Shown here piece after piece: positions 19,216 through 44,100 of a stretch of 64,000 nt of DNA. Source of the DNA: Ranitomeya imitator. Lineage: Eukaryota. Each line of letters opens with the position of its first letter. Positions within the stretch are counted from its first letter, which is position 1. Where the stretch lies: NCBI RefSeq assembly GCF_032444005.1, contig NC_091284.1, positions 552,606,001 through 552,670,000 of the forward strand, given 5' to 3'. The position numbers and the translations under genes are program-made. Under the pieces are notes generated by a model that was not told where the DNA came from, did no database searches, and saw only the letters and a program-made list of their open reading frames with translations.

Positions 19216-19978
19216 TGTTATGATCTGGTGGCCTAGGAGCAGCATGAGACGTACGCTGGAGAAGGTGGTACCTTTACCGACCGCAAACCCTGAACTAGCA
19301 GCGCAACTAGAAGTAGCTGTGGGGGGTACCTAACACTCCCTAGACCCCTCGACACAGCCTAAGAACTAACTACCCCTAAAGACAGAAACGGGAAAACTAT
19401 CTTGCCTCAGAGAAAATTCCCAAAGGATAGACAGCCGCCCACAAATATTGACTGTGAAAGGAGAGAGAAATAACATACGCAGACATGAAATCAGGATTTA
19501 GCATAGGAGGCCATACTAGCTAAAAAGGAAGAATAGGACAGACTACTATGCGGTCAGTATTAAAACACTAGAAAATATCCACCACAGAAAATACAAAACA
19601 CCACATCTGACTAAAGACATGGAGGGTATATCTGCATCTCCAGAGACACAGCTAGGCTGCAAAAAATCCTTCACAGACAAAGCTGGACAAAACAAAACAA
19701 GAAAATGCACAGAATATAAGGTCCACAGCAGGTGGACAGCAAAAACAAGGCCAGAACTTATCTTTGAAGAAATGAACAGCAGACCAGGAGAGACCAAGTA
19801 TGGATGTGAATCCTCCAAAAACAATGGCCAACTGGCACTGACTAAAGGATAAAGCAGGACTTAAATAGCCCAGCCCAAATTGCAAAAAATGGATACACCT
19901 GATAAATGCTGCGATCCAACTACCGCAGCACTACCACTCATAACCACCAGAGGGAGCCCAAGAGCAGAATTCACAACA
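19216..19978 (-). repeat. 3' LTR of the minus-strand chromovirus
   Basis: TG...CA ends; follows the PPT on the minus strand; about 15 differences by eye from 24489-25249. Confidence 0.95.
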
Positions 19979-22900: not shown

Positions 22901-24372
22901 GGATTTCCAATCTAACACCGGATTATGTAGCTGTAACCATGGAAAACCCAGCACAATATCATCATGCAAATTATGCAACACCAGAAAATGACAATCTTCC
23001 TGATGGGCTGGCGCCATGCGCATGGTCAGCTGTGTCCAAAACTGAGGTTTATTTTTAGCCAACGGTGTAGCATCAATCCCCCTTAAAGGAATAGGGTTCT
23101 GCAAAGGCTGCAAGGGGAAACCTCAATGTCTGGCAAATTCTAAGTCAGAGCGGCGCCTGAATCCACAAATGCCATGACAGAAAATGACGATAATGAGCAG
23201 ATCAAGGTCACAGATAACAGAAATTTTGGTTGTACAGTACTGATGGTAACAGAACTAGCGATTCTCTTTGTACGCTTAGGGCAATCAGAAATAACATGAG
23301 CAGAATCGCCGCAGTAAAAACACAACCTATTCTGACACCTAAATCCTTGTCGTTCAGCTCTAGGCAAAATCCTATCACACTGCATAGGCTCAGGGCTCCT
23401 CTCGGAGGACAACTCCACAGTGTGCACAACTCTGCGCTCGCGCAAGCGCCGATCAATCTGAATGGCCAGAGACATAGAATCAATCAGACCAGCATGCGTG
23501 GGGATCCCCACCATAACATCTTTAACGGATTCAGAAAGACCCTTTCTGAAAATTGCCATCAAGGCATCCTCATTCCATTTAGTTAGTACAGACCATTTTC
23601 TAAATTTCTGGCAATACGATTCTGCCGCTTCTTGACCCTGACACAGGGCCAACAAGATCTTCTCAGCTTGATCCACAGAATTAGGCTCATCATACAATAA
23701 CGCCAATGCTTGAAAGAAAGAATCAACATTAAAGGGAACCTGTCACCTGAATTTGGCGGGACCAGTTTTGGGTCATATGGGCGGAGTTTTCAGGTGTTTG
23801 ATTCACCCTTTCCTTACCCGCTGGCTGCATGCTGGCCGAAATATTGGATGGAAGTTCATTCTCTGTTCTCCGTAGTACATGCCTGCGCAAAGCAAGATTA
23901 CCTTGCGCAGGCATGTACTATGGAGGACAGAGAATTAACTTCAATCCAATATTTCGGCCAGCATGCAGCCAGCGGGTAAGGAAAGGGTGAATCAAACACC
24001 TGAAAACTCCGCCCATATGACCCAAAACTGGTCCCGCCAAATTCAGGTGACAGGTTCCCTTTAAGCAAAGCAGGATTGCCAGATTCCAGGGAAAATGCCC
24101 AATCCTGTGGGTCACCACGCAGCAAGGATATGATGATTTTAACCTGCTGAATGGGATCACCAGAAGAACGGGGTCTCAATGCAAAAAACAGTTTACAATT
24201 ATTTTTGAAACTCAAAAATTTGTATCTGTCACCAAAAAATAAATCAGGAGTGGGAATCTTAGGTTCTAAGGCAGGAGTCTGAATAATAAAATCTGAAATA
24301 CCCTGTACCCTAGCAGCAAGCTGATCCACATGAGAAACTAACTCCTGAACATTCATGTTAATACTAGGTTCC
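19979..24372 (-). pseudogene. gag-pol: gag-pol of the minus-strand chromovirus (gag-PR-RT-RH-IN-chromodomain), frameshifted
   Basis: ORFs 23898-24518, 23140-23706, 22556-23113, 21987-22559, 20994-21959, 19971-20978 tile the domains in order. Confidence 0.93.
23733..24060. mobile_element. 328-bp T2/Kolobok-type MITE inserted in gag
   Basis: TTAA at 23729-23732 and 24061-24064; near-perfect full-length inverted repeat starting AGGGAACCTGTCACC; removal restores gag NPALLNVDSFFQAL. Confidence 0.95.
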
Positions 24373-24488
24373 GTAGCCACCCAGAGATTAAGAGGGAAGA
24401 GAACACAGAATAGACTGGGGAAAAAATGGCTCAAGAGCTTCCTTCCCTTGTTCTGAGATGCATTTAACTCATTGTTGGCCAGTTGTAC

Positions 24489-25249
24489 TGTTATGATCTG
24501 GTGGCCTAGGAGCAGCATGAGACGTGCTCTGGAGAAGGTGGTACCTTTACTGACCGCAAACCCTGAACTAGCAGCGCAACTAGAAGTAGCTGTGGGGGGT
24601 ACCTAACACTCCCTAGACCCCTCGACACAGCCTAAGAACTAACTACCCCTAAAGACAGAAGCGGGAAAACTATCTTGCCTCAGAGAAAATTCCCAAAGGA
24701 TAGACAGCCGCCCACAAATATTGACTGTGAAAGGAGAGGGAAATAACATACGCAGACATGAAATCAGGATTTAGCATAGGAGGCCATACTAGCTAAAAAG
24801 GAAGAATAGGACAGAGTACTATGCGGTCAGTATTAAAACACTAGAAAATATCCACCACAGAAAATACAAAACACCACATCTGACTAAAGACATGGAGGGT
24901 ATATCTGCATCTCCAGAGACACAGCTAGGCTGCAAAAAATCCTTCACAGACAAAGCTGGACAAAACAAAACAAGAAAATGCACAGACTACAAGGTCCACA
25001 GCAGGTGGACAGCAAAAACAGGGTCAGAACTTAACTTTGAAGAAATGAACAGCAGACCAGGAGAGACCAAGTATGGATGTGAATCCTCCAAAAACAATGG
25101 ACAACTGGCACTGACTAAAGGATAAAGCAGGACTTAAATAGCCCAGCCCAAATTGCAAAAAATGGATACACCTGATACATGCTGCGATCCAACTACCGCA
25201 GCACTACCACTCATAACCACCGGAGGGAGCCCAAGAGCAGAATTCACAA
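24489..25249 (-). repeat. 5' LTR of the minus-strand chromovirus (outer 2 bp missing or mutated)
   Basis: Direct repeat of 19216-19978; TATTTAA box at 25134-25140 on the minus strand. Confidence 0.93.
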
Positions 25250-25436
25250 TTGTCCTCTGAGGGACAGTGTCTTAGGGCCCAAGATAAGATTGGACCATCT
25301 GAGGTCGCTTCAGATCTTACTCCTCTTCCTAAGCACTATTGACAATATGCAGAAATGTTTTCTAAAAAGTCTGCGAAGACTCTTAATCCTCATCGCCCCT
25401 ATAATTGCCCCATAGACCTCATTCCAGGGACAGAAC
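25250..25436 (+). pseudogene. Host Gypsy (family B), piece 2 (PR-RT linker)
   Basis: Reads LPKHY*QYAEMFSKKSAKTLNPHRPYNCPIDLIPGTE and continues PPHGRVYHL after 41117. Confidence 0.85.
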
Positions 25437-26201
25437 TGTTGTGAATTCTGTTACCGAACTCCCTCCTGTGGTCATGAATGGTACTTCGGCGAGTTCTGTC
25501 CATGGACTCCCTCTGGTGGCTGTGAGTGGAGCTGCTGCTTCTGAGGTTCCTTCCACAGGTGACTTGGTTTATTCTTTGGCTGGCTGCTCTATTTAACTCC
25601 ACTCAGATCGTTACTCCATGCCAGCCGTCAATGTTCTTGTACTGGTTCAGTTCGCTCTTGGATCTTTCTGGTGACCTGTCTACTCCAGCAGAAGCTAAGT
25701 CCCTGCTAGTTAATTATTTGTTCATTGTTTTCTTGTCCAGCTTGCTATCATGATTTTGTCCTGCTAGCTGGAAGCTCTGGGATGCAGAGTGGCACCTCCG
25801 CACAGTGAGTCGGTGCGGAGGTCTTTTTGCACACTCTGCGTGGTCTTTTGTAGTTTTTTGTGCTGACCGCAAAGATACCTTTTCTATCCTCAGTCTGTTT
25901 AGTAAGTCTGGCCTCCCTTTGCTGAAACTTGTTTCATTCCTGTGTTTGTGACTTTCATCTTAACTCACAGTCAATATATGTGGGGGGCTGCCTTTTCCTT
26001 TGGGGAATTTCTCTGAGGCAAGGTAGGCTTTATTTTCTTTCTCTAGGGCTACTTAGCTCTTAGGCTGTGAAAAGGCATCTAGGCAGCGTTAGGTACGCTC
26101 CACGGCTATTTCTAGTGTGTGTGATAGGATTAGGGGTTGCGGTCAGCAGAGCTCCCACCATCAGGTCGTTCCAGGTGCTCCTAACCACCAGGTCCATAAC
26201 A
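25437..26201 (+). repeat. Array LTR1 (765 bp)
   Basis: TGTTGTGAATTC...GGTCCATAACA; TATTTAA at 25590-25596. Confidence 0.95.
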
Positions 26202-26338
26202 GTACAGCTGGCCCAAAGTATTAATGCATCTCAATAGAGGGATAAGAGAAGTTCTGAGACCTATTTTTTTTTCTCTGCAGTGTGTTTTGTCTTTCTTTTC
26301 CCCTTAACCTCTGGGTGGTTCAGGACACAGGTGTAGAT

Positions 26339-29300
26339 ATGGACATTCAAGGTCTGTCCTCTTGTGTGGATCATCTCACTGTAAGGGTACAAAACATTCA
26401 AGATTTTGTGGTTCAGAATCCGATGTTAGAGCCTAGAATCCCAATTCCTGATTTGTTTTCTGGGGATAGATCTAAGTTCCTGAATTTCAAAAATAATTGT
26501 AAACTGTTTCTTGCTTTGAAACCCCGCTCCTCTGGTGACCCCGTTCAACAAGTAAAAATCATTATTTCTTTGTTGCGTGGTGACCCTCAAGACTGGGCAT
26601 TTTCCCTTGCGCCAGGAGATCCTGCATTGCGTGATGTAGATGCGTTTTTTCTGGCGCTTGGATTGCTTTATGATGAACCACATTCAGTGGATCAGGCAGA
26701 GAAAATCTTGCTGGCTTTGTGTCAGGGTCAGGATGAAGCGGAGGTATATTGTCAGAAGTTTAGAAAGTGCTCTGTGCTTACTCAGTGGAATGAGCGTGCC
26801 CTGGCGGCAATTTTCAGAAAGGGTCTTTCTGAAACCCTTAAGGATGTCATGGTGGGATTTCCCACGCCTGCTGGTCTGAATGAGTCTATGTCCTTGGCCA
26901 TTCAGATCAATCGGCGCTTGCGGGAGCGCAAAGCTGTGCACCATTTGGTGGTATTCTCTGAGCATAGGCCTGAGCCTATGCAATGTGATAGGACTTTGAC
27001 CAGAGCTGAACGGCAAGAACACAGACGTCAGAATGGGCTGTGTTTTTACTGTGGTGACTCCACTCATGCTATCTCCGATTGTCCTAAGCGCACTAAGCGG
27101 TTCGCTAGGTCTGCCACCATTGGTACGGTACAGTCTAAATTTTTTTTGTCCGTTACTCTGATTTGCTCTTTGTCATCCTATTCTGTTATGGCATTTGTGG
27201 ATTCAGGCGCTGCCCTGAATTTGATGGACTTAGAGTTTGCCAGGCGCTGTGGTTTTTTCTTGAAGCCCATGCAGTATCCTATTCCATTGAGAGGAATTGT
27301 TGCTACGCCTTTGGCCAAGAATAAGCCTCAGTACTGGACTCAATTGACCATGTGCATGGCTCCTGCACATCAGGAGGATATTCGCTTTTTGGTGTTGCAT
27401 AATCTGCATGATGTGGTCGTTTTGGGGTTGCCATGGCTACAGGTCCATAATCCAGTATTGGATTGGAAATCTATGTCTGTGGCCAGCTGGAGTTGTCAAG
27501 GGGTACATGGTGATGTTCCATTGCTGTCAATTTCGCCTTCCACTCCTTCTGAAGTCCCTGAATTTTTGTCGGATTACCGGGATGTTTTTGATGAGCCCAA
27601 ATCCAGTGCCCTACCTCCTCATAGGGATTGCGATTGTGCTATTAATTTGATTCCTGGTAGTAAGTTTCCTAAGGGCCGACTGTTCAATTTATCGTGCCAG
27701 AGCACGCCGCTATGCGGAGTTATATAAAGGAATCCTTGGAGAAAGGTCATATTCGCCCGTCGTCATCACCGTTGGGAGCAGGGTTCTTTTTTGTGGCCAA
27801 GAAGGATGGTTCTTTGAGACCTTGTATTGATTACTGCCTTCTTAATAAGATCACAGTCAAATTTCAGTACCCTTTGCCGCTGCTGTCTGATTTGTTTGCT
27901 CGGATTAAGGGGGCTAGTTGGTTCACCAAGATAGATCTTCGAGGGGCGTATAATCTTGTGCGTATTTAACAGGGCGATGAATGGAAAACAGCATTTAATA
28001 CGCCCGAGGGCCATTTTGAGTACCTGGTTATGCCATTCGGGCTTTCTAATGCTCCATCTGTATTTCAGTCCTTTATGCATGACATCTTCCGAGAGTACCA
28101 GGATAGATTCATGATTGTATATTTGGATGATATTTTGGTCTTTTCGGATGAATGGGAATCTCATGTAAAGCAGGTCAGAATGGTGTTCCAGGTCCTTCGT
28201 GCGAATTCCTTGTTTGTGAAGGGGTCAAAGTGTCTCTTTGGAGTTCAGAGGGTTTCATTTTTGGGTTTCATTTTTTCCCCTTCTACTATCGAGATGGACC
28301 CTGTTAAAGTTCAGGCCATTTATGATTGGACTCAGCCGACATCTGTGAAGAGCCTGCAGAAGTTCCTGGGCTTTGATAATTTTTACCGTCGCTTCATCGC
28401 TAATTTTTCTAGTGTTGCTAAACCGTTGACTTATTTTACCAAGAAAGGTGCTGATGTGGTCAATTGGTCCTCTGCGGCTGTAGAGGCTTTTCAGGAGTTG
28501 AAGCGTCGTTTTTCTTCTGCCCCTGTGTTGTGCCACCCAGATGTTTCGCTCCCTTTTCAGGTCGAGGTTGATGCTTCTGAGATTGGAGCAGGGGCTGTTT
28601 TGTCGCAAAGAAGTTCTGATGGCTCGGTGATGAAACCATGTGCCTTCTTTTCTAGAAAGTTCTCGCCTGCTGAGCGCAATTATGATGTTGGCAATCGAGA
28701 GTTGTTGGCCATGAAGTGGGCATTCGAGGAGTGGCGACATTGGCTTGAAGGAGCCAAGCATCGCGTGGTGGTTTTGACGGATCACAAGAATTTGACTTAT
28801 CTCGAGTCTGCCAAATGGTTGAATCCTAGACAGGCTCGATGGTCGCTGTTTTTCTCCCATTTTGATTTTGTGGTTTCGTACCTTCCGGGCTCTAAGAATG
28901 TGAAGGCTGATGCCCTGTCATGGAGTTTTGTGCCTGACTCTTCGGGTGTTCCTGAGCCAGCGGGTATTCTCAAAGAGGGGGTAATTTTGTCTGCCATCTC
29001 CCCTGATTTGCGGGTGCTGCAGAAGTTTCAGGCTGATAGACCTGACCGTTGTCCAGCGGAGAAACTGTTTGTCCCTGATAGATGGACTAGTAGAGTTATC
29101 TCTGAGGTTCATTGTTCGGTGTTGGCTGGTCATCCTGGAATCTTTGGTACCAGAGATTTGTTGGCTAGATCCTTTTGGTGGCCTTCTTTGTCACGGGATG
29201 TGCGTTCTTTTGTGCAGTCCTGTGGGACTTGTGCTCGGGCTAAGCCCTGCTGTTCTCATGCCAGTGGGTTGCTTTTGCCCTTGCCGGTCCCAAAGAGGCC

Positions 29301-30396
29301 CTGTACGCATATTTCCATGGATTTTATTTCAGATCTCCCTGTCTCTCAAAGGATGTCGGTCATTTGGGTGGTTTGTGATCGCTTCTCTAAGATGGTCCAT
29401 TTGGTACCCTTGTCTAAATTGCCTTCCTCCTCTGATTTGGTGCCATTGTTTTTTCCAGGATGTGGTTCGTTTGCATGGCATTCCGGAGAACATCATCTCG
29501 GACAGAGGTTCCCAGTTTGTTTCGAGGTTTTGGCGGTCCTTTTGTGCTAAGATGGGCATTGATTTGTCTTTTTCTTCGGCTTTCCATCCTCAGACAAATG
29601 GCCAAACCGAACGAACTAATCAGACTTTGGAAACATATCTGAGATGCTTTGTTTCTGCTGATCAGGATGATTGGGTGTCCTTCTTGCCTTTGGCTGAGTT
29701 CGCCCTTAATAATCGGGCCAGCTCGGCTACTTTGGTTTTGTCGTTTTTCTGTAATTCTGGTTTTCATCCTCGTTTCTCTTCAGGGCAGGTTGAGCCTTCG
29801 GACTGTCCTGGTGTGGATACTGTGGTGGACAGGTTGCAGCAGATTTGGACTCATGTGGTGGACAATTTGACATTGTCCCAGGAGAAGGCTCAACGTTTCG
29901 CTAACCGCCGGCGCTGTGTTGGTCCCCGACTTCGTGTTGGGGATTTGGTTTGGTTGTCGTCTCGTTATGTTCCTATGAAGGTTTCCTCTCCTAAGTTTAA
30001 GCCTCGTTTCATTGGTCCGTATAAGATTTCTGAAGTTCTCAATCCTGTGTCATTTTGTTTGGCCCTTCCAGCTTCTTTTGCCATCCATAATGTGTTCCAT
30101 AGGTCGTTATTGCGGAGATACGTGGCGCCTATGGTTCCCTCCGTTGATCCTCCTGCCCCGGTGTTGGTCGAGGGGGAGTTGGAGTATGTGGTGGAGAAGA
30201 TTTTGGATTCTCGTATTTCGAGACGGAAACTCCAGTACCTGGTCAAGTGGAAGGGTTATGGTCAGGAAGATAATTCCTGGGTTTTTGCCTCTGATGTTCA
30301 TGCTGCCGATCTAGTTCGTGTCTTTCATTTGGCTCGTCCTAATCGGCCTGGGGGCTCTGGTGAGGGTTCGGTGACCCCTCCTCAAGGGGGGGGTAC
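26339..30396 (+). pseudogene. gag-pol: gag-pol copy 1 (inactivated)
   Basis: CCHC knuckle CFYCGDSTHAISDCP, DSGA, YLDD, RNase H, integrase, chromodomain; frameshift ~27693, TAA 27967-27969, frameshift ~29455. Confidence 0.95.
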
Positions 30397-31161
30397 TGTT
30401 GTGAATTCTGTTACCGAACTCCCTCCTGTGGTCATGAATGGTACTTCGGCGAGTTCTGTCCATGGACTCCCTCTGGTGGCTGTGAGTGGAGCTGCTGCTT
30501 CTGAGGTTCCTTCCACAGGTGACTTGGTTTATTCTTTGGCTGGCTGCTCTATTTAACTCCACTCAGATCGTTACTCCATGCCAGCCGTCAATGTTCTTGT
30601 ACTGGTTCAGTTCGCTCTTGGATCTTTCTGGTGACCTGTCTACTCCAGCAGAAGCTAAGTCCCTGCTAGTTAATTATTTGTTCATTTTTTTCTTGTCCAG
30701 CTTGCTATCATGATTTTGTCCTGCTAGCTGGAAGCTCTGGGATGCAGAGTGGCACCTCCGCACAGTGAGTCGGTGCGGAGGTCTTTTTGCACACTCTGCG
30801 TGGTCTTTTGTAGTTTTTTGTGCTGACCGCAAAGATACCTTTTCTATCCTCAGTCTGTTTAGTAAGTCTGGCCTCCCTTTGCTGAAACTTGTTTCATTCC
30901 TGTGTTTGTGACTTTCATCTTAACTCACAGTCAATATATGTGGGGGGCTGCCTTTTCCTTTGGGGAATTTCTCTGAGGCAAGGTAGGCTTTATTTTCTTT
31001 CTCTAGGGCTACTTAGCTCTTAGGCTGTGAAAAGGCATCTAGGCAGCGTTAGGTACGCTCCACGGCTATTTCTAGTGTGTGTGATAGGATTAGGGGTTGC
31101 GGTCAGCAGAGCTCCCACCATCAGGTCGTTCCAGGTGCTCCTAACCACCAGGTCCATAACA
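30397..31161 (+). repeat. Array LTR2 (shared between units)
   Basis: Preceded by a PPT; nearly identical to LTR1. Confidence 0.95.
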
Positions 31162-31298
31162 GTACAGCTGGCCCAAAGTATTAATGCATCTCAATAGAGG
31201 GATAAGAGAAGTTCTGAGACCTATTTTTTTTTCTCTGCAGTGTGTTTTGTCTTTCTTTTCCCCTTAACCTCTGGGTGGTTCAGGACACAGGTGTAGAT

Positions 31299-34200
31299 AT
31301 GGACATTCAAGGTCTGTCCTCTTGTGTGGATCATCTCACTGTAAGGGTACAAAACATTCAAGATTTTGTGGTTCAGAATCCGATGTTAGAGCCTAGAATC
31401 CCAATTCCTGATTTGTTTTCTGGGGATAGATCTAAGTTCCTGAATTTCAAAAATAATTGTAAACTGTTTCTTGCTTTGAAACCCCGCTCCTCTGGTGACC
31501 CCGTTCAACAAGTAAAAATCATTATTTCTTTGTTGCGTGGTGACCCTCAAGACTGGGCATTTTCCCTTGCGCCAGGAGATCCTGCATTGCGTGATGTAGA
31601 TGCGTTTTTTCTGGCGCTTGGATTGCTTTATGATGAACCACATTCAGTGGATCAGGCAGAGAAAATCTTGCTGGCTTTGTGTCAGGGTCAGGATGAAGCG
31701 GAGGTATATTGTCAGAAGTTTAGAAAGTGCTCTGTGCTTACTCAGTGGAATGAGCGTGCCCTGGCGGCAATTTTCAGAAAGGGTCTTTCTGAAACCCTTA
31801 AGGATGTCATGGTGGGATTTCCCACGCCTGCTGGTCTGAATGAGTCTATGTCCTTGGCCATTCAGATCAATCGGCGCTTGCGGGAGCGCAAAGCTGTGCA
31901 CCATTTGGTGGTATTCTCTAAGCATAGGCCTGAGCCTATGCAATGTGATAGGACTTTGACCAGAGCTGAACGGCAAGAACACAGACGTCAGAATGGGCTG
32001 TGTTTTTACTGTGGTGACTCCACTCATGCTATCTCCGATTGTCCTAAGCGCACTAAGCGGTTCGCTAGGTCTGCCACCATTGGTACGGTACAGTCTAAAT
32101 TTTTTTTGTCCGTTACTCTGATTTGCTCTTTGTCATCCTATTCTGTTATGGCATTTGTGGATTCAGGCGCTGCCCTGAATTTGATGGACTTAGAGTTTGC
32201 CAGGCGCTGTGGTTTTTTCTTGAAGCCCATGCAGTATCCTATTCCATTGAGAGGAATTGTTGCTACGCCTTTGGCCAAGAATAAGCCTCAGTACTGGACT
32301 CAATTGACCATGTGCATGGCTCCTGCACATCAGGAGGATATTCGCTTTTTGGTGTTGCATAATCTGCATGATGTGGTCGTTTTGGGGTTGCCATGGCTAC
32401 AGGTCCATAATCCAGTATTGGATTGGAAATCTATGTCTGTGGCCAGCTGGAGTTGTCAAGGGGTACATGGTGATGTTCCATTGCTGTCAATTTCGCCTTC
32501 CACTCCTTCTGAAGTCCCTGAATTTTTGTCGGATTACCGGGATGTTTTTGATGAGCCCAAATCCAGTGCCCTACCTCCTCATAGGGATTGCGATTGTGCT
32601 ATTAATTTGATTCCTGGTAGTAAGTTTCCTAAGGGCCGACTGTTCAATTTATCGTGCCAGAGCACGCCGCTATGCGGAGTTATATAAAGGAATCCTTGGA
32701 GAAAGGTCATATTCGCCCGTCGTCATCACCGTTGGGAGCAGGGTTCTTTTTTGTGGCCAAGAAGGATGGTTCTTTGAGACCTTGTATTGATTACTGCCTT
32801 CTTAATAAGATCACAGTCAAATTTCAGTACCCTTTGCCGCTGCTGTCTGATTTGTTTGCTCGGATTAAGGGGGCTAGTTGGTTCACCAAGATAGATCTTC
32901 GAGGGGCGTATAATCTTGTGCGTATTTAACAGGGCGATGAATGGAAAACAGCATTTAATACGCCCGAGGGCCATTTTGAGTACCTGGTTATGCCATTCGG
33001 GCTTTCTAATGCTCCATCTGTATTTCAGTCCTTTATGCATGACATCTTCCGAGAGTACCAGGATAGATTCATGATTGTATATTTGGATGATATTTTGGTC
33101 TTTTCGGATGAATGGGAATCTCATGTAAAGCAGGTCAGAATGGTGTTCCAGGTCCTTCGTGCGAATTCCTTGTTTGTGAAGGGGTCAAAGTGTCTCTTTG
33201 GAGTTCAGAGGGTTTCATTTTTGGGTTTCATTTTTTCCCCTTCTACTATCGAGATGGACCCTGTTAAAGTTCAGGCCATTTATGATTGGACTCAGCCGAC
33301 ATCTGTGAAGAGCCTGCAGAAGTTCCTGGGCTTTGATAATTTTTACCGTCGCTTCATCGCTAATTTTTCTAGTGTTGCTAAACCGTTGACTTATTTTACC
33401 AAGAAAGGTGCTGATGTGGTCAATTGGTCCTCTGCGGCTGTAGAGGCTTTTCAGGAGTTGAAGCGTCGTTTTTCTTCTGCCCCTGTGTTGTGCCACCCAG
33501 ATGTTTCGCTCCCGTTTCAGGTCGAGGTTGATGCTTCTGAGATTGGAGCAGGGGCTGTTTTGTCGCAAAGAAGTTCTGATGGCTCGGTGATGAAACCATG
33601 TGCCTTCTTTTCTAGAAAGTTCTCGCCTGCTGAGCGCAATTATGATGTTGGCAATTGAGAGTTGTTGGCCATGAAGTGGGCATTCGAGGAGTGGCGACAT
33701 TGGCTTGAAGGAGCCAAGCATCGCGTGGTGGTTTTGACGGATCACAAGAATTTGACTTATCTCGAGTCTGCCAAACGGTTGAATCCTAGACAGGCTCGAT
33801 GGTCGCTGTTTTTCTCCCGTTTTGATTTTGTGGTTTCGTACCTTCCGGGCTCTAAGAATGTGAAGGCTGATGCCCTGTCAAGGAGTTTTGTGCCTGACTC
33901 TTCGGGTGTTCCTGAGCCAGCGGGTATTCTCAAAGAGGGGGTAATTTTGTCTGCCATCTCCCCTGATTTGCGGGTGCTGCAGAAGTTTCAGGCTGATAGA
34001 CCTGACCGTTGTCCAGCGGAGAAACTGTTTGTCCCTGATAGATGGACTAGTAGAGTTATCTCTGAGGTTCATTGTTCAGTGTTGGCTGGTCATCCTGGAA
34101 TCTTTGGTACCAGAGATTTGTTGGCTAGATCCTTTTGGTGGCCTTCTTTGTCACGGGATGTGCGTTCTTTTGTGCAGTCCTGTGGGACTTGTGCTCGGGC

Positions 34201-35356
34201 TAAGCCCTGCTGTTCTCATGCCAGTGGGTTGCTTTTGCCCTTGCCGGTCCCAAAGAGGCCCTGTACGCATATTTCCATGGATTTTATTTCAGATCTCCCT
34301 GTCTCTCAAAGGATGTCGGTCATTTGGGTGGTTTGTGATCGCTTCTCTAAGATGGTCCATTTGGTACCCTTGTCTAAATTGCCTTCCTCCTCTGATTTGG
34401 TGCCATTGTTTTTTCCAGGATGTGGTTCGTTTGCATGGCATTCCGGAGAACATCATCTCGGACAGAGGTTCCCAGTTTGTTTTGAGGTTTTGGCGGTCCT
34501 TTTGTGCTAAGATGGGCATTGATTTGTCTTTTTCTTCGGCTTTCCATCCTCAGACAAATGGCCTAACCGAACGAACTAATCAGACTTTGGAAACATATCT
34601 GAGATGCTTTGTTTCTGCTGATCAGGATGATTGGGTGTCCTTCTTGCCTTTGGCTGAGTTCGCCCTTAATAATCGGGCCAGCTCGGCTACTTTGGTTTTG
34701 TCGTTTTTCTGTAATTCTGGTTTTCATCCTCGTTTCTCTTCAGGGCAGGTTGAGCCTTCGGACTGTCCTGGTGTGGATACTGTGGTGGACAGGTTGCAGC
34801 AGATTTGGACTCATGTGGTGGACAATTTGACATTGTCCCAGGAGAAGGCTCAACGTTTCGCTAACCGCCGGCGCTGTGTTGGTCCCCGACTTCGTGTTGG
34901 GGATTTGGTTTGGTTGTCGTCTCGTTATGTTCCTATGAAGGTTTCCTCTCCTAAGTTTAAGCCTCGTTTCATTGGTCCGTATAAGATTTCTGAAGTTCTC
35001 AATCCTGTGTCATTTTGTTTGGCCCTTCCAGCTTCTTTTGCCATCCATAATGTGTTCCATAGGTCGTTATTGCGGAGATACGTGGCGCCTATGGTTCCCT
35101 CCGTTGATCCTCCTGCCCCGGTGTTGGTCGAGGGGGAGTTGGAGTATGTGGTGGAGAAGATTTTGGATTCTCGTATTTCGAGACGGAAACTCCAGTACCT
35201 GGTCAAGTGGAAGGGTTATGGTCAGGAAGATAATTCCTGGGTTTTTGCCTCTGATGTTCATGCTGCCGATCTAGTTCGTGTCTTTCATTTGGCTCGTCCT
35301 AATCGGCCTGGGGGCTCTGGTGAGGGTTCGGTGACCCCTCCTCAAGGGGGGGGTAC
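31299..35356 (+). pseudogene. gag-pol: gag-pol copy 2 (inactivated)
   Basis: Same domains and lesions as copy 1, plus a private TGA at 33656-33658. Confidence 0.95.
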
Positions 35357-36121
35357 TGTTGTGAATTCTGTTACCGAACTCCCTCCTGTGGTCATGAATG
35401 GTACTTCGGCGAGTTCTGTCCATGGACTCCCTCTGGTGGCTGTGAGTGGAGCTGCTGCTTCTGAGGTTCCTTCCACAGGTGACTTGGTTTATTCTTTGGC
35501 TGGCTGCTCTATTTAACTCCACTCAGATCGTTACTCCATGCCAGCCGTCAATGTTCTTGTACTGGTTCAGTTCGCTCTTGGATCTTTCTGGTGACCTGTC
35601 TACTCCAGCAGAAGCTAAGTCCCTGCTAGTTAATTATTTGTTCATTTTTTTCTTGTCCAGCTTGCTATCATGATTTTGTCCTGCTAGCTGGAAGCTCTGG
35701 GATGCAGAGTGGCACCTCCGCACAGTGAGTCGGTGCGGAGGTCTTTTTGCACACTCTGCGTGGTCTTTTGTAGTTTTTTGTGCTGACCGCAAAGATACCT
35801 TTTCTATCCTCAGTCTGTTTAGTAAGTCTGGCCTCCCTTTGCTGAAACTTGTTTCATTCCTGTGTTTGTGACTTTCATCTTAACTCACAGTCAATATATG
35901 TGGGGGGCTGCCTTTTCCTTTGGGGAATTTCTCTGAGGCAAGGTAGGCTTTATTTTCTTTCTCTAGGGCTACTTAGCTCTTAGGCTGTGAAAAGGCATCT
36001 AGGCAGCGTTAGGTACGCTCCACGGCTATTTCTAGTGTGTGTGATAGGATTAGGGGTTGCGGTCAGCAGAGCTCCCACCATCAGGTCGTTCCAGGTGCTC
36101 CTAACCACCAGGTCCATAACA
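35357..36121 (+). repeat. Array LTR3 (shared between units)
   Basis: No difference from LTR2 that I could see. Confidence 0.95.
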
Positions 36122-36258
36122 GTACAGCTGGCCCAAAGTATTAATGCATCTCAATAGAGGGATAAGAGAAGTTCTGAGACCTATTTTTTTTTCTCTGCAG
36201 TGTGTTTTGTCTTTCTTTTCCCCTTAACCTCTGGGTGGTTCAGGACACAGGTGTAGAT

Positions 36259-39200
36259 ATGGACATTCAAGGTCTGTCCTCTTGTGTGGATCATCTCACT
36301 GTAAGGGTACAAAACATTCAAGATTTTGTGGTTCAGAATCCGATGTTAGAGCCTAGAATCCCAATTCCTGATTTGTTTTCTGGGGATAGATCTAAGTTCC
36401 TGAATTTCAAAAATAATTGTAAACTGTTTCTTGCTTTGAAACCCCGCTCCTCTGGTGACCCCGTTCAACAAGTAAAAATCATTATTTCTTTGTTGCGTGG
36501 TGACCCTCAAGACTGGGCATTTTCCCTTGCGCCAGGAGATCCTGCATTGCGTGATGTAGGTGCGTTTTTTCTGGCGCTTGGATTGCTTTATGATGAACCA
36601 CATTCAGTGGATCAGGCAGAGAAAATCTTGCTGGCTTTGTGTCAGGGTCAGGATGAAGCGGAGGTATATTGTCAGAAGTTTAGAAAGTGCTCTGTGCTTA
36701 CTCAGTGGAATGAGCGTGCCCTGGCGGCAATTTTCAGAAAGGGTCTTTCTGAAACCCTTAAGGATGTCATGGTGGGATTTCCCACGCCTGCTGGTCTGAA
36801 TGAGTCTATGTCCTTGGCCATTCAGATCAATCGGCGCTTGCGGGAGCGCAAAGCTGTGCACCATTTGGTGGTATTCTCTGAGCATAGGCCTGAGCCTATG
36901 CAATGTGATAGGACTTTGACCAGAGCTGAACGGCAAGAACACAGACGTCAGAATGGGCTGTGTTTTTACTGTGGTGACTCCACTCATGCTATCTCCGATT
37001 GTCCTAAGCGCACTAAGCGGTTCGCTAGGTCTGCCACCATTGGTACGGTACAGTCTAAATTTTTTTTGTCCGTTACTCTGATTTGCTCTTTGTCATCCTA
37101 TTCTGTTATGGCATTTGTGGATTCAGGCGCTGCCCTGAATTTGATGGACTTAGAGTTTGCCAGGCGCTGTGGTTTTTTCTTGAAGCCCATGCAGTATCCT
37201 ATTCCATTGAGAGGAATTGTTGCTACGCCTTTGGCCAAGAATAAGCCTCAGTACTGGACTCAATTGACCATGTGCATGGCTCCTGCACATCAGGAGGATA
37301 TTCGCTTTTTGGTGTTGCATAATCTGCATGATGTGGTCGTTTTGGGGTTGCCATGGCTACAGGTCCATAATCCAGTATTGGATTGGAAATCTATGTCTGT
37401 GGCCAGCTGGAGTTGTCAAGGGGTACATGGTGATGTTCCATTGCTGTCAATTTCGCCTTCCACTCCTTCTGAAGTCCCTGAATTTTTGTCGGATTACCGG
37501 GATGTTTTTGATGAGCCCAAATCCAGTGCCCTACCTCCTCATAGGGATTGCGATTGTGCTATTAATTTGATTCCTGGTAGTAAGTTTCCTAAGGGCCGAC
37601 TGTTCAATTTATCGTGCCAGAGCACGCCGCTATGCGGAGTTATATAAAGGAATCCTTGGAGAAAGGTCATATTCGCCCGTCGTCATCACCGTTGGGAGCA
37701 GGGTTCTTTTTTGTGGCCAAGAAGGATGGTTCTTTGAGACCTTGTATTGATTACTGCCTTCTTAATAAGATCACAGTCAAATTTCAGTACCCTTTGCCGC
37801 TGCTGTCTGATTTGTTTGCTCGGATTAAGGGGGCTAGTTGGTTCACCAAGATAGATCTTCGAGGGGCGTATAATCTTGTGCGTATTTAACAGGGCGATGA
37901 ATGGAAAACAGCATTTAATACGCCCGAGGGCCATTTTGAGTACCTGGTTATGCCATTCGGGCTTTCTAATGCTCCATCTGTATTTCAGTCCTTTATGCAT
38001 GACATCTTCCGAGAGTACCAGGATAGATTCATGATTGTATATTTGGATGATATTTTGGTCTTTTCGGATGAATGGGAATCTCATGTAAAGCAGGTCAGAA
38101 TGGTGTTCCAGGTCCTTCGTGCGAATTCCTTGTTTGTGAAGGGGTCAAAGTGTCTCTTTGGAGTTCAGAGGGTTTCATTTTTGGGTTTCATTTTTTCCCC
38201 TTCTACTATCGAGATGGACCCTGTTAAAGTTCAGGCCATTTATGATTGGACTCAGCCGACATCTGTGAAGAGCCTGCAGAAGTTCCTGGGCTTTGATAAT
38301 TTTTACCGTCGCTTCATCGCTAATTTTTCTAGTGTTGCTAAACCGTTGACTTATTTTACCAAGAAAGGTGCTGATGTGGTCAATTGGTCCTCTGCCGCTG
38401 TAGAGGCTTTTCAGGAGTTGAAGCGTCGTTTTTCTTCTGCCCCTGTGTTGTGCCACCCAGATGTTTCGCTCCCGTTTCAGGTCGAGGTTGATGCTTCTGA
38501 GATTGGAGCAGGGGCTGTTTTGTCGCAAAGAAGTTCTGATGGCTCGGTGATGAAACCATGTGCCTTCTTTTCTAGAAAGTTCTCGCCTGCTGAGCGCAAT
38601 TATGATGTTGGCAATCGAGAGTTGTTGGCCATGAAGTGGGCATTCGAGGAGTGGCGACATTGGCTTGAAGGAGCCAAGCATCGCGTGGTGGTTTTGACGG
38701 ATCACAAGAATTTGACTTATCTCGAGTCTGCCAAGCGGTTGAATCCTAGACAGGCTCGATGGTCGCTGTTTTTCTCCCGTTTTGATTTTGTGGTTTCGTA
38801 CCTTCCGGGCTCTAAGAATGTGAAGGCTGATGCCCTGTCAAGGAGTTTTGTGCCTGACTCTTCGGGTGTTCCTGAGCCAGCGGGTATTCTCAAAGAGGGG
38901 GTAATTTTGTCTGCCATCTCCCCTGATTTGCGGGTGCTGCAGAAGTTTCAGGCTGATAGACCTGACGTTGTCCAGCGGAGAAACTGTTTGTCCCTGATAG
39001 ATGGACTAGTAGAGTTATCTCTGAGGTTCATTGTTCGGTGTTGGCTGGTCATCCTGGAATCTTTGGTACCAGAGATTTGTTGGCTAGATCCTTTTGGTGG
39101 CCTTCTTTGTCACGGGATGTGCGTTCTTTTGTGCAGTCCTGTGGGACTTGTGCTCGGGCTAAGCCCTGCTGTTCTCATGCCAGTGGGTTGCTTTTGCCCT

Positions 39201-40315
39201 TGCCGGTCCCAAAGAGGCCCTGTACGCATATTTCCATGGATTTTATTTCAGATCTCCCTGTCTCTCAAAGGATGTCGGTCATTTGGGTGGTTTGTGATCG
39301 CTTCTCTAAGATGGTCCATTTGGTACCCTTGTCTAAATTGCCTTCCTCCTCTGATTTGGTGCCATTGTTTTTTCCAGGATGTGGTTCGTTTGCATGGCAT
39401 TCCGGAGAACATCATCTCGGACAGAGGTTCCCAGTTTGTTTCGAGGTTTTGGCGGTCCTTTTGTGCTAAGATGGGCATTGATTTGTCTTTTTCTTCGGCT
39501 TTCCATCCTCAGACAAATGGCCAAACCGAACGAACTAATCAGACTTTGGAAACATATCTGAGATGCTTTGTTTCTGCTGATCAGGATGATTGGGTGTCCT
39601 TCTTGCCTTTGGCTGAGTTCGCCCTTAATAATCGGGCCAGCTCGGCTACTTTGGTTTTGTCGTTTTTCTGTAATTCTGGTTTTCATCCTCGTTTCTCTTC
39701 AGGGCAGGTTGAGCCTTCGGACTGTCCTGGTGTGGATACTGTGGTGGACAGGTTGCAGCAGATTTGGACTCATGTGGTGGACAATTTGACATTGTCCCAG
39801 GAGAAGGCTCAATGTTTCGCTAACCGCCGGCGCTGTGTTGGTCCCCGACTTCGTGTTGGGGATTTGGTTTGGTTGTCGTCTCGTTATGTTCCTATGAAGG
39901 TTTCCTCTCCTAAGTTTAAGCCTCGTTTCATTGGTCCGTATAAGATTTCTGAAGTTCTCAATCCTGTGTCATTTTGTTTGGCCCTTCCAGCTTCTTTTGC
40001 CATCCATAATGTGTTCCATAGGTCGTTATTGCGGAGATACGTGGCGCCTATGGTTCCCTCCGTTGATCCTCCTGCCCCGGTGTTGGTCGAGGGGGAGTTG
40101 GAGTATGTGGTGGAGAAGATTTTGGATTCTCGTATTTCGAGACGGAAACTCCAGTACCTGGTCAAGTGGAAGGGTTATGGTCAGGAAGATAATTCCTGGG
40201 TTTTTGCCTCTGATGTTCATGCTGCTGATCTAGTTCGTGTCTTTCATTTGGCTCGTCCTAATCGGCCTGGGGGCTCTGGTGAGGGTTCGGTGACCCCTCC
40301 TCAAGGGGGGGGTAC
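36259..40315 (+). pseudogene. gag-pol: gag-pol copy 3 (inactivated)
   Basis: Same domains and lesions, plus a private 1-bp deletion at ~38966. Confidence 0.95.
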
Positions 40316-41111
40316 TGTTGTGAATTCTGTTACCGAACTCCCTCCTGTGGTCATGAATGGTACTTCGGCGAGTTCTGTCCATGGACTCCCTCTGGTGGCT
40401 GTGAGTGGAGCTGCTGCTTCTGAGGTTCCTTCCACAGGTGACTTGGTTTATTCTTTGGCTGGCTGCTCTATTTAACTCCATTCAGATCGTTACTCCATGC
40501 CAGCTGTCAATGTTCTTGTACTGGTTCAGTTCGCTCTTGGATCTGTCTGGTGACCTGTCTACTCCAGCAGAAGCTAAGTCCCTGCTAGTTAATTATTTGT
40601 TCATTGTTTTCTTGTCCAGCTTGCTATCATGATTTTGCCTTGCTAGCTGGAAGCTCTGGGATGCAGAGTGGCACCTCCGCACCGTGAGTCGGTGCGGAGG
40701 TCTTTTTGCACACTCTGCGTGGTCTTTTTGTAGTTTTTTGTGCTGACCGCAAAGATACCTTTTCTATCCTCAGTCTGTTTAGTAAGTCTGGCCTCCCTTT
40801 GCTGAAACTTGTTTCATTCCTGTGTTTGTGACTTTCATCTTAACTCACAGTCAATATATGTGGGGGGCTGCCTTTTCCTTTGGGGAATTTCTCTGAGGCA
40901 AGGTAGGCTTTATTTTCTTTCTCTAGGGCTAGTTAGCTCTTAGGCTGTGAAGAGGCGTCTAGGCAGCGTTAGGTACGCTCCACGGCTATTTCTAGTGTGT
41001 GTGATAGGATTAGGGGTTGCGGTCAGCATAGCTCCCACTTCCCAGAGCTTGTTCTGTGTTAGTTTAACCATCAGGTTGTTCCGGGTGCTCCTAACCACCA
41101 GGTCCATAATA
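40316..41111 (+). repeat. Array LTR4 (796 bp, diverged from LTR1-3)
   Basis: Has a 30-bp segment (TTCCCAGAGC...GTTTAAC) absent from LTR1-3 and about a dozen substitutions. Confidence 0.95.
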
Positions 41112-44100
41112 CAGAACCTCCTCACGGGCGTGTCTACCATTTGTACCTTCTGTAGACTCAGGCTATGTCAGAGTATATCAAGGATAATCTGGTGAGGGGG
41201 TTTATTGATAAGTCGGTGTCTCCTGCTGGGGCGAGGTTCTTCTTTATCCAGAAGAAGAACGGGGAATTTCAATCTTGCATTGATTAAAAGGGTTTGAATT
41301 CCATTACCATTAAGAACAAATAACCTTTGCCACTCCTTTCTGAGTTGTTTGACAGACTGCTAGGATATTTTCTAAACTAGATCTGCGTGACAGCTATAAC
41401 TTAATACATATTCAAGAAGGAGACGAATGGAAAACTGCGTTTAATACTCGGGACGGTCATTATGAGTACCTGGTAATGCCATTTGGTCTCTCTAATGCTC
41501 CAGCCATCTTGCAGGATTTCGTCAATGATATTTTCTGGGAGATGTTTCCCACATCCGTAGTCGTCTACCTGGACGACATACTTAATTTTGTCTCCCAATC
41601 TGGATACTCACCGTAGAGATGTGGCCAGGGTCCTTGAACTTTTGCGCACCAACTCTCTCTACGCCAAACTAGAGAAGTATGTGTTTGAGCAAGAGTCCCT
41701 ACCATTCCTTAAGTACATCATTTCACCCCAAGGTTTGGCTATGGATCCTGCCAAGGTGGAATTGGTATTGAATTGGCAGGAGCCACATTCCCTTAACGCG
41801 GTTAAGCGCTTCATGGGGTTTATTAACTACTACCACCAGTTAATCCCCCACTTCTCTACTCTGGCAACTCCCTTCGTAGCCCTCACCAAGAAGGGAGCTA
41901 ACACTAAGCAATGGACTGAGGAGGTCTCCAAGGCCTTTGCTTCCTTGAAGTCCCACTTTGTCAGGGCCCCTGTGCTACATCAGCCTGATGTGGATAAACC
42001 CTTCATCCTGGAGGTGGATGCCTCTTCTGTCAGTATATGAGTTGTCCTTTATCAAAAGGATGCTCACATATGCTAACACCCTTGTTTCCTTTTCTCTAAG
42101 ATCATTTCACTGGCTGAGAGGAATTATTTTATTGGGGACAGGGGGTTACTGGCCATGAAGTTGGCATTCTCAGAGTGGAGATATCTCCTAGAGGGAGATT
42201 GGCATCCCTTCCAAGTATTCACGGATGACAAAAATCTGCTCTATCTGCAGACGGACCAACAGCTGAATTCTCGCCAGGCCAGGTGTTCCTTATTCTTCTC
42301 CCGATTGAATGTCACTTTTCATTTTCTTTCTTGGGAGAATAAACTGTGTGCTGATGCCCTATCCCGTTCCATATTATCATCCAAGGAAAGGGACGAGTCA
42401 CGGCTAATTGTCCCCTCGAAGAGTCTCCGAATGGTGGCTCTGGTCTTGGTCGAGCAGGTGCCTCCGGGCAAATCTTATGTTACAAGCTAACCTGCAGCTG
42501 GAGGTTCTCTCTTGGGCTCACACTTCTAAGTTAGGTGGGCAATTTGGCATCAAGAGGACTACTGAGCTTTTGGAGAGGTCTTAATGGTGGCCGCAGATTG
42601 TGTGTGACGTGAGGGACTACGTTCATGCTTGTGTATCTTGTGCCAGGAATCAGCCTCCCTAGCTGAGACCCATGGGCTTGCTTCGTCATTTGCCATAGGA
42701 TGATAGGCCATGGGAGATGGTCGGGATGAACTTTTTGGTGTACCTGCACAAGTCCCGTAACAACACAGTTATTTGGGTAGTCACCAACCAATTCGTCAAG
42801 ATAATTACGATGAATCCAGCAGGAATGCAGTAAAATCAATTAATTTATTTTTTTATTTAAAAAAAGGAGGGGTTATATCCTATGGTACACCACTTGTAAA
42901 TAAGTTATAATTTCAGCATTATGCACATATGGCAGCGTTCTTCCGATGCGTTTCGACTGACATCTTAATCATGATTAAGACGTCAGTCGAAACACGACGG
43001 AAGAACGCTTTTTTAAATGAAGAAATAAATTCATTGATTTTACTACATTCCTGCTGGATTCATCGTATTTTTCTGTGGACTGAGTGCTCAACTTTTCCGT
43101 TCAGGAACAGATGTGGAACAGCCGATATTCAGGTGAGCTATTTTTTGTTTTTTTTGTGGATTTCTCCAAGATGGTACATCTGGTCCCCCTTCCATGTGTA
43201 CCCTTGGCACGTGCTTTGGCAGTACTTTTCGTGAAGCATATTTTTCACCTTCACAGGATGCCTGACAAGATTGTCAGTGACCGGGGTCCCCAGTTCATCT
43301 CTCGGTTCAGAAGAGAGCTTTGTCAGTTTCTCAATATTGAGATCAATCTCTACCGTGTATCATCCTGAGACAAATGACCTGGTGGAGAGGGCCACTGGTC
43401 ATGTACCTTTGGCATTTTGTCTTTGCCAGGCATGATGACTGGGCATCCTTAGTGCATTGGGTGGAGATTGCTCTAAATAATTCCATCTTCGATTCCACAA
43501 GCCATTACTCCTTAACTATGGTCAGCATCCGCGTGTTCCCGTGCCCATGCCCATCTCATCTTACAACCCTAGGGTGGTGGACTGGGCAGTAGAGGCTCAT
43601 GACATTTGGGACTGCATGAAAGATGCCATTAGGGATTCTAAGGAAAGAATGAGGAACTCCGCCGACGTGCACTGTCATCCCGCTCTGGTCTTCGCCCCTG
43701 GGGATTTATTGCAGCTCTCGACTCATAACATAAGACTGCGTGTGGAGTCCACTAAATTTGGTCCCTGCTATCTAGGTCCTTTCAAGGTCCTGCAACAAGT
43801 GAAAGCGGTAGTCTATTGTCTTAGTCTTCCACCACATCTAAACATCACCGACACCTTCCATGTGTCTTTGTTGAAACCCGTTTATACGACCTGGTCTTCT
43901 TGGACTCCTGCTGGGAGCTCGGATACATCTCTGGACGAATTTGGAGTCAATGCCATTGTCTGATCCAAGGTGGTACGTGGCAAAAATTTTTTGGGGGTGA
44001 ACTGGAAAGGTCATGGCCAGCGGATAGGACCTTGGAGCCTATAAAGCACATTTGTACCCCCAGCTTATTGCGGCTTTCGAGCGTGGTGAACATCCCCGGG

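Follow-up and report, generated by a model that had tools for sequence, protein, structure and literature searches.

Organization of the array

How do three copies of an LTR retrotransposon come to lie head to tail at one site, with a single LTR between each pair of neighbors? The question is raised by positions 25437-41111 of the 64-kb window (the whole stretch of DNA that was analyzed). Four LTRs are found here on one strand (+), starting at 25437, 30397, 35357 and 40316, with three internal regions between them. This is an arrangement of n internal regions with n+1 co-oriented LTRs, in which one LTR is common to neighboring units. A scan of the window with 300-nt probes gives recurrences at 25435, 30395, 35355 and 40314, with spacings of 4960, 4960 and 4959, and thus bears out the four LTRs, three internal regions and period described in the initial annotation. 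There are no further copies of the unit within the window, and the number of three is as given by the assembly. The features of the locus, in order, are:

18782..19215 (+), protease part of the host Gypsy element, which is of another family and lies upstream of the two nested insertions
19216..25251 (-), neighbor element of a related family, single copy, about 185 bp upstream of the array and in the opposite orientation
25252..25430 (+), host Gypsy, end of PR and start of RT, between the inverted neighbor and the array
25431..25436 (+), left copy of the target site duplication (TSD), CAGAAC; minimal reading GAAC at 25433-25436
25437..26201 (+), LTR1, 765 bp, TG...CA; TATTTAA at 25590-25596, and GCCAGCCGT at 25620-25628 as the predicted transcript start
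26202..30396 (+), internal region 1, 4195 bp
26204-26212 (+), leader/PBS-like ACAGCTGGC in internal region 1
26282-27727 (+), gag-PR ORF of unit 1
27694-29550 (+), RT, RNase H and IN zinc finger of unit 1
29069-30396 (+), IN core, SH3 and chromodomain of unit 1, in an ORF that continues into LTR2 and ends at 30556
30384-30393 (+), polypurine tract (PPT) of unit 1
30397..31161 (+), LTR2, 765 bp, common to units 1 and 2, of the 5'-LTR type
31162..35356 (+), internal region 2, 4195 bp, with private changes at 31920, 33656, 34078, 34483 and 34564
35357..36121 (+), LTR3, 765 bp, identical to LTR2
36122..40315 (+), internal region 3, 4194 bp, with private changes at 36560, 38396, 38735, 39813 and 40226 and a 1-bp deletion at 38965/38966
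40316..41111 (+), LTR4, 796 bp (798 if its end is placed at 41113)
41112..41117 (+), right copy of the TSD, CAGAAC; minimal reading GAAC at 41114-41117
41118..44035 (+), host Gypsy continuation (RT, RNase H, IN), decayed, with many stops

On its 5' side every internal LTR abuts the same polypurine tract (AAGGGGGGGG followed by TAC), and on its 3' side the same leader (GTACAGCTGGCC...). The internal junctions consist only of PPT to LTR and LTR to leader, with no host sequence or duplication. TSDs belonging to the internal LTR junctions, on the absence of which the initial annotation had made its reading depend, were looked for, and no extra bases are present at any of them. The one duplication that it had reported, (CA)GAAC, is present on both flanks of the array. 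Its extent is ambiguous, as had been pointed out: it is read either as GAAC, with LTR4 ending in ...TACA (41113), or as CAGAAC, with LTR4 ending in ...ATA (41111). Joining position 25436 to 41118 gives ...NCPIDLIPGTEPPHGRVYHL..., a typical Gypsy RT start, and the host frame is restored by removal of the array, as proposed. The host continuation shares about 28-54% amino-acid identity with the array element. The inverted neighbor has 83% nucleotide identity with the array unit and was used as the outgroup for polarizing changes. The two LTRs of this neighbor (19216-19976 and 24489-25249) are 98.2% identical.

Identity and coding content of the element

The domain order of the array element is gag-PR-RT-RH-IN-chromodomain. 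Pfam matches are found for RVT_1, RT_RNaseH, Integrase_H2C2, rve (partial), SH3_Tf2-1 and Chromo, and the matches to Retrotrans_gag and gag-asp_proteas are both slightly under the curated cut-off of Pfam. The best hits of its proteins carry the names Tf2 polyprotein and Gypsy integrase-like, and the nearest protein relatives, with 88-95% identity, are from Ranitomeya imitator. On these domains and best hits it is classed here as a Tf1/sushi-like chromovirus (Ty3/gypsy). It shares with that group the gag-PR-RT-RH-IN order, the Tf2-1-type SH3 domain and the C-terminal chromodomain, but the copy in the array is defective.

Three lesions relative to the outgroup are present in all units: a 1-bp deletion after 27693, a stop at 27967-27969, a position that is read through by Ranitomeya family members, and a 1-bp insertion at 29455. 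Unit 2 has in addition a private stop (CGA>TGA) at 33656. Owing to the 1-bp deletion at 38965/38966, unit 3 has a chance ORF of 841 residues (37950-40475) in which two frames are joined. This ORF was considered as a repaired pol and rejected, as neither the zinc finger of IN nor the first half of its core is present in it.

The 506-residue ORF of the window has no exact-sequence match on record, and scans of metagenome and viral contigs with the conserved 26-nt PPT/LTR junction gave no match. The ENA contig L001 has a length of 4960 bp, equal to the period, but belongs to a different family (58% amino-acid identity), and the match in length is coincidental. Its ends overlap by 141 bp, so that the cycle is in truth 4819 bp long; this is how LTR-int-LTR usually collapses in a de Bruijn graph.

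No tRNA-type primer binding site was recognized after the LTR on reading by eye. The leader at 26204-26212 is complementary over 9 nt to 40499-40507 in LTR4, located 30 bp past the start of TATTTAA, at a transcript start that is predicted only and that lies at the GCCAGCTGT motif. In the neighbor family, a compensatory pair is found. Self-priming, in which the leader pairs with the transcript's 5' end in place of a tRNA, has been described for the Tf1/sushi group (PMC6317226), and the 9-nt leader segment of the array element may be a case of it. A self-priming arrangement appears to fit the sequence better than a tRNA primer binding site. The predicted self-primer carries a mutation of the 5'-LTR type that is common to all units.

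Differences among the LTRs

There is a large difference in divergence between the LTRs and the units. LTR1 and LTR4 differ by 12-13 substitutions in 765 bp (~1.7%) and two indels, the extra bases of LTR4 relative to LTR1-3 being 30 at 41039-41068 and one T. In comparison, any two of the three units (25437-30396, 30397-35356 and 35357-40315) show only 10-11 differences in 4960 bp (~0.2%). The stronger divergence of LTR4 than of LTR1-3 had not been mentioned in the initial annotation. LTR2 differs from LTR1 solely at 30687 (T for G). The T is found at 30687 and 35647, in LTR2 and LTR3, and G in LTR1 and LTR4, giving one shared-derived site.

LTR1-3 have in common the derived states at 25626, 25804, 26052, 26072 and 26077 and a deletion of 30 bp; at all of these, the ancestral state is still present in LTR4 and in the outgroup. 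The outgroup aligns poorly over the 5' half of the LTR (43-71% local identity), which makes the polarity weak for 25602-25804; it is strong for 26052-26077 and for the 30-bp deletion. The derived changes of LTR4 itself begin at LTR position 166, and none of them is present in LTR2 or LTR3. LTR2 and LTR3 match the 5' LTR in its derived states and in its deletion, as would a recombinant LTR with its exchange point near the start. LTR1 and LTR4 are identical across positions 1-165, which makes the hybrid junction invisible and leaves no LTR4-type marker, and for this reason we infer the hybrid nature of this LTR rather than see it.

Differences among the units

Fifteen of the 16 between-unit differences are private to a single unit, with 4-6 in each (14 substitutions and one indel outside homopolymers in total). 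Those of unit 1 include 28816T, 28859A and 28921T. CpG transitions account for 7 of the 14 private substitutions, as compared to 6% CpG sites (p = 7e-6), and the ratio of transitions to transversions across all 15 substitutions is 10:5. The private state differs from the outgroup at all 13 of the sites that can be polarized (13 of 15). At every amino-acid-changing site, the private state is absent from up to 19 family proteins. Two other sources of the private variants were considered and rejected. Gene conversion by the inverted neighbor is at odds with a private state that differs from the neighbor at every informative site, and polishing toward a family consensus is at odds with the lack of that state, at these sites, in any of the family proteins sampled.

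The differences are clustered, 11 of the 16 being located within 28476-29604 (scan p about 0.003, for an interval chosen post hoc). This suggests that the units have been partly homogenized, and 0.2% may therefore underestimate the age of the first duplication.

Origin of the array

The array is probably a single decayed insertion that was later amplified in place, at the DNA level, by unequal LTR-LTR exchange. The late timing is argued by the split between LTR1-3 and LTR4, the divergence of 1.7% against 0.2%, the shared lesions and the private, CpG-biased changes. The period is exactly LTR plus internal region, and non-homologous duplication, which would not produce such a period, is therefore disfavored. 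The proposal of the initial annotation that one insertion later expanded in place agrees with the single TSD, the clean junctions, the exact period, the shared lesions and the 5'-LTR states of LTR2 and LTR3.

Three other explanations were weighed against this history. Near-identical 5-kb tandem units are the classic setting for copy-number errors, and an assembler might have expanded or miscounted a repeat that in reality has one unit or some other number. Each unit, however, has its 4-6 private differences, mostly substitutions and half of them CpG transitions, a signature of germline mutation that is unlike read error or polishing bleed-through. Moreover, three distinct units are not obtainable from two haplotypes, and an array of 15.7 kb should be within the reach of a single long read. 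An assembly artefact is accordingly quite improbable. Independent insertions at the same site, or into the ends of one another, can draw on the targeting of heterochromatin by chromodomain integrases, and the host Gypsy did receive two related elements at a distance of about 185 bp. Such insertions are expected to leave a TSD inside the tandem junction as well as LTR-LTR junctions. Here a single shared LTR with no extra bases is observed, and copy-specific lesions are common to all units, which makes this explanation extremely improbable.

A multimer formed before integration and integrated once would likewise be flanked by one TSD and have the junctions seen here. The sources of such a multimer that were considered are rolling-circle copying from a circle with one LTR, a switch of template in the course of reverse transcription, and recombination of cDNA; the route has been put forward before (PMC5932611, Fig. 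1B). Under it, the four LTRs are expected to be equidistant. Instead, LTR1-3 share at least five derived substitutions and the 30-bp deletion, and the differences are split between both lineages. Homogenization could mask equidistance: if whole units evolved in concert and the LTR at the edge did not take part, the pattern of LTR1-3 against LTR4 could be mimicked in part, and the clustering of the unit differences hints at some homogenization. This is an extra process, however, while late duplication explains the pattern directly, and all units have the three disabling lesions as well as the self-primer mutation of the 5'-LTR type. A pre-integration multimer with LTR1-3 homogenized and LTR4 left behind is thus very improbable. 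Of the two routes offered in the initial annotation, unequal LTR-LTR recombination fits the locus, and the circle-derived concatemer does not unless homogenization is added.

Late amplification by unequal exchange would have proceeded in the following steps; we infer the mechanism of the exchange, its position and the order of the two duplications. One Tf1/sushi-like chromovirus would have inserted at the protease/RT boundary of an older Gypsy element, producing the one TSD. This copy would have been resident until its two LTRs had diverged by ~1.7%, and its three disabling lesions may have been gained in place or carried in at insertion. Much later, a misaligned homologous exchange between sister chromatids or homologues would have brought together the 3' LTR of one copy and the 5' LTR of its counterpart; homology-guided template switching is an alternative. 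The exchange point would lie within the first 165-189 bp of the LTR, and the product would be LTR-int-LTR-int-LTR with a middle LTR that cannot be told apart from the 5' LTR. Another unequal exchange, between the two 4960-bp units, would have followed soon after to give three units. LTR2 and LTR3 would both derive from the first recombinant LTR, which fits their shared T at 30687 and 35647. Each unit would thereafter have decayed neutrally and independently.

Comparison with known tandem arrays

Ectopic or unequal LTR-LTR recombination is the documented origin of shared-LTR tandems (McGurk & Barbash 2018, Drosophila survey, PMC5932611, Fig. 1A and text), and this origin is also credited to Ke & Voytas 1997, as cited there. 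The array belongs to this described and common outcome, a well-known by-product of recombination between the LTRs of an element, and is the reciprocal product of the exchange that forms solo LTRs. As in other tandems of this kind, there is one LTR between adjacent elements, a single TSD, and a period of LTR plus internal region. Such tandems are usually dimers, in comparison with three units in an amphibian genome here. Moreover, the polarized LTR markers of the array would place the exchange in the first 165-189 bp, well after insertion.

HERV-K108 (PMC4149278), a human shared-LTR tandem, provides another vertebrate case of LTR-int-LTR-int-LTR at one integration site. It is a dimer of an endogenous retrovirus with documented allelic states, whereas the array is a trimer of a chromovirus.

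In two-step models, a tandem array of a multi-kb TE unit is the proposed seed stage of satellites (PMC5932611). The array resembles TE-derived satellites and macrosatellites in being a tandem array of a several-kb TE unit, but a macrosatellite would have many copies, copy-number polymorphism or spread, and only three copies are present in the window. To regard it as an early macrosatellite is speculation.

The array is a DNA-level amplification of a dead element, with no evident function, and provides a clean, internally dated case of an LTR element that multiplied without transposing. Solo-LTR deletion and tandem multimers arise from the same process of unequal exchange, and here the LTR markers reveal the order of events. 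Because the LTRs are shared, the assumption behind LTR-pair dating is broken, and pairs among LTR1-LTR3 would give an insertion age that is about tenfold or more too young. The locus alone alters no current view; a genome-wide count of shared-LTR junctions would gauge the weight of this route for genome size or satellite birth. That dead LTR elements often undergo recombinational tandem amplification in dendrobatids, whose genomes are giant and rich in Gypsy elements, with this locus as an early stage whose history is still readable, is an idea we consider unlikely. If true, it would mean an appreciable TE load acquired without retrotransposition and the seeding of multi-kb macrosatellites.

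Overall structure of the array

The array at 25437-41111 contains four LTRs and three internal regions of one LTR retrotransposon, arranged head to tail. In a repeat search over 24000-43000, 300-nt probes recur at 25435, 30395, 35355 and 40314, so the intervals are 4960, 4960 and 4959, the same period as that given in the initial annotation. The three 4.96-kb units (25437-30396, 30397-35356 and 35357-40315) show 10, 11 and 11 pairwise differences (~0.2%) in global alignments.

Features of the array and its flanks
18851-19207, + strand, host Gypsy, protease part
19216-25251, - strand, neighbour, a single-copy chromovirus of a related family, nested in the host Gypsy ~185 bp upstream of the array
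25437-26201, + strand, LTR1 (765 bp)
26282-27727, + strand, gag with zinc knuckle, and aspartic protease (unit 1)
27694-29550, + strand, RT, RNase H and integrase zinc finger (unit 1)
29069-30396, + strand, integrase core, Tf2-1-type SH3 domain and chromodomain (unit 1; the ORF extends into LTR2)
30397-31161, + strand, LTR2 (765 bp)
35357-36121, + strand, LTR3 (765 bp)
40316-41111, + strand, LTR4 (796 bp; one extra T, and 30 extra bases at 41039-41068)
41162-44035, + strand, host Gypsy, RT to IN part

The host Gypsy is of a different family and more decayed than the array element. When 25436 is joined to 41118, the host frame reads on without a break, ...PIDLIPGTEPPHGRVYHL..., and RT motifs come next, so that removal of the array restores this frame as annotated initially. 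The single (CA)GAAC target duplication is also recovered, with CAGAAC on both flanks (25431-25436 and 41112-41117). As that annotation indicated by its bracketed CA, the duplication can be read in two ways: either it would be 4 bp (GAAC), with LTR4 terminating in CA at 41113, or it would be 6 bp, LTR4 then having TA in place of its terminal CA through mutation. All internal LTRs have an identical polypurine tract (AAGGGGGGGG, then TAC) on their upstream side and an identical leader on their downstream side, with no bases between. Only two observations are added here: LTR4 is longer than LTR1-3, and it is much diverged from them.

Judged by domain content and best matches, the array element is a chromovirus of the Tf1/sushi type. 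In protein searches, its products are 88-95% identical to many Ranitomeya imitator gene models, and only about 50-59% identical to proteins of other frogs and fishes. A scan of metagenome and viral contigs for the PPT/LTR junction motif gave no matches, and an exact-sequence look-up of a 506-aa ORF from the window found no record. One metagenome contig (ERZ27260041 k141_2040, ENA) has the length of the array period, 4960 bp, and carries a complete chromovirus of another family (58% amino acid identity). Its ends overlap by 141 bp, the assembler k-mer, so that it represents a 4819-bp cycle, the form to which short-read graphs collapse LTR elements. Its agreement in length with the array period is a coincidence.

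Differences among the LTRs

LTR1, LTR2 and LTR3 differ from one another only in a G of LTR1 (25727) that is T in LTR2 (30687) and LTR3 (35647), whereas LTR4 differs from them by 12-13 substitutions and two indels. The neighbour element, 83% identical to the array unit in nucleotide sequence, was used as the outgroup for polarising these changes. In a stretch where the outgroup is well aligned, positions 26052, 26072 and 26077 are derived in all of LTR1-3; a weaker indication of the same polarity comes from 25626 and 25804. LTR1-3 also have a derived 30-bp deletion in common; a homologue of the lost segment is still recognisable in the outgroup. LTR4 also has derived changes of its own, beginning at LTR position 166, all of which are absent from LTR2 and LTR3. 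The original pair of LTRs had therefore long diverged before the 5'-type LTR was copied twice.

Unequal LTR exchange produces a middle LTR with 3'-LTR sequence at its start and 5'-LTR sequence at its end. As LTR2 and LTR3 are of the 5' type, the exchange point would have to lie upstream of LTR position 190, and upstream of position 166 provided that the LTR4 change there predates the exchange. Positions 1-165 form the second-longest tract without any mismatch between LTR1 and LTR4. The array has exactly the LTR-to-LTR distance as its period, and its junctions are like those in a normal element. An exchange at homologous LTR positions would produce both, which random duplication or repeated insertions would not.

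Differences among the units

Compared with the outgroup, all units share three lesions: one base is deleted after 27693, the codon at 27967-27969 is a TAA stop, and one base is inserted at 29455. In Ranitomeya proteins of the family, neither the stop nor the first frameshift interrupts the sequence. The amplified unit was therefore already defective, which fits amplification at the DNA level.

The units are told apart by 16 differences, 15 of which are private, each to a single unit. The private state is unlike the outgroup in all polarisable cases (13 of 15), and wherever it changes an amino acid, none of the sampled family proteins has it. About nine of the private changes affect the protein sequence, and six are silent; among them are a stop codon gained in unit 2 (33656) and the loss of one base in unit 3. 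CpG transitions make up 7 of the 14 private substitutions, with CpG sites at 6% of the unit (p = 7e-6), and transitions and transversions stand at 10:5 over all 15 substitutions. This pattern is best read as three physically separate copies decaying neutrally in the germline. In unit 3, the 1-bp deletion and the equivalent of the older 29455 insertion are offsetting indels that open an 841-aa ORF (37950-40475). It is an accident and not a repaired pol, as it has no integrase zinc finger and only the second half of the core.

The private, CpG-biased variants also argue against an assembly artefact behind the three-unit count, which we consider unlikely. Read error would not be expected to leave such changes, two haplotypes cannot supply three distinct units, and polishing towards a family consensus is at odds with private states not found in the sampled family proteins. 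A concatemer formed before integration and inserted whole would have the same junctions as the array. However, it predicts four equidistant LTRs, while LTR4 stands apart, and it would require later homogenisation sparing LTR4; this origin is quite improbable. The internal junctions rule out a double insertion of the same family.

In the preferred model, which we consider likely, a single insertion would have come first, with its two LTRs diverging over a long residence. An unequal exchange between them, near the LTR start, would then have created a second unit with a 5'-type middle LTR, and a second out-of-register exchange soon after would have added the third. The T of LTR2 and LTR3, the only shared-derived site among the differences, fits one mutation in the first recombinant LTR before the second exchange, and the near-star pattern of differences says that the two steps would have been close in time.

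LTR1 and LTR4 have diverged by ~1.7% and the units by ~0.2%, which dates the amplification to roughly the final eighth of the time that the element has been in place. Purely as an illustration, if 1e-9 neutral changes per site per year are assumed, the insertion would have occurred roughly 8 million years ago and the amplification 1 million. The unit differences are clustered, with 11 of 16 in 28476-29604 (1.13 kb, RNase H/integrase region) and its equivalents in units 2 and 3 (scan p about 0.003, for an interval picked post hoc). CpG density does not account for this cluster; one possibility is partial homogenisation outside it. If so, the first duplication would be older than 0.2% implies. 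Pairwise divergence inside the tract is ~0.65%, well under the LTR1-LTR4 value.

A candidate self-priming arrangement

The leader sequence ACAGCTGGC (26204-26212) is complementary to GCCAGCTGT in LTR4 (40499-40507; LTR1 counterpart 25620-25628). Counted from the first base of a TATTTAA box (LTR1 copy 25590-25596), the latter motif begins 30 bp downstream, about where transcription is predicted to start. The neighbour family has a compensating pair, ACAACTGGC/GCCAGTTGT. Self-priming has been described for Tf1/sushi elements (PMC6317226), and the complementarity together with the compensatory pair is a candidate for the arrangement expected of it. A T>C change at 25626 inside the motif creates a mismatch in LTR1-3 and none in LTR4, possibly a further indication that the unit was dead when it was amplified.

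The neighbour element and the rest of the window

The two LTRs of the neighbour show 98.2% identity. Indels of its own break its reading frames, its 6-bp TSD is imperfect (GTCCTG/GTCCTC), and at one LTR end the terminal dinucleotide is altered. A near-perfect 336-bp palindrome (23729-24064, 95.8% self-complementary) is inserted in its gag and absent from the array units; the palindrome has the ends TTAAAGGGAACCTGTCACC..., lies beside a TTAAAGG-like flank and resembles a hairpin MITE insertion. The closeness of two chromodomain-bearing elements, array and neighbour, fits heterochromatin targeting.

Elsewhere, a 160-bp N run (53697-53856), just preceded by a 31-bp tandem repeat (53220-53581), directly adjoins a 199-bp repeat (53857-54052) with an inverted partner at 55279-55477 (94.5%). 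An ORF between the two repeats (54339-54956) has Tc1/mariner-type transposase HTH domains, and the whole is probably a Tc1-like element with its left inverted repeat against the gap. A second ORF (58289-59053, 254 aa), with a BED zinc finger, is possibly a hAT-type transposase remnant. C-rich, strongly skewed degenerate tandem repeats (9127-11276; periods about 141, 204 and 309; GC 54-58%) are followed by a CpG-rich 466-bp palindrome (11433-11898, 93.6%). Three short arrays (1024-1672, 57382-57858 and 61408-62032) have units of 134-137 bp in 4.7, 3.4 and 4.5 copies, with consensus sequences unrelated at sight.

Comparison with known tandem elements

Ectopic LTR recombination yields tandem LTR elements with shared LTRs (McGurk and Barbash, Figure 1A, PMC5932611). 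According to the conclusion of that study, most Drosophila LTR families form such tandems, which are also discussed there as satellite seeds. In the human provirus HERV-K108, which is polymorphic, two units in tandem have one middle LTR in common (PMC4149278). The array is thus of a known kind, and what is new is the third unit and an unusually readable internal history. From its structure, the array may possibly represent an early macrosatellite, as proposed in the initial annotation.
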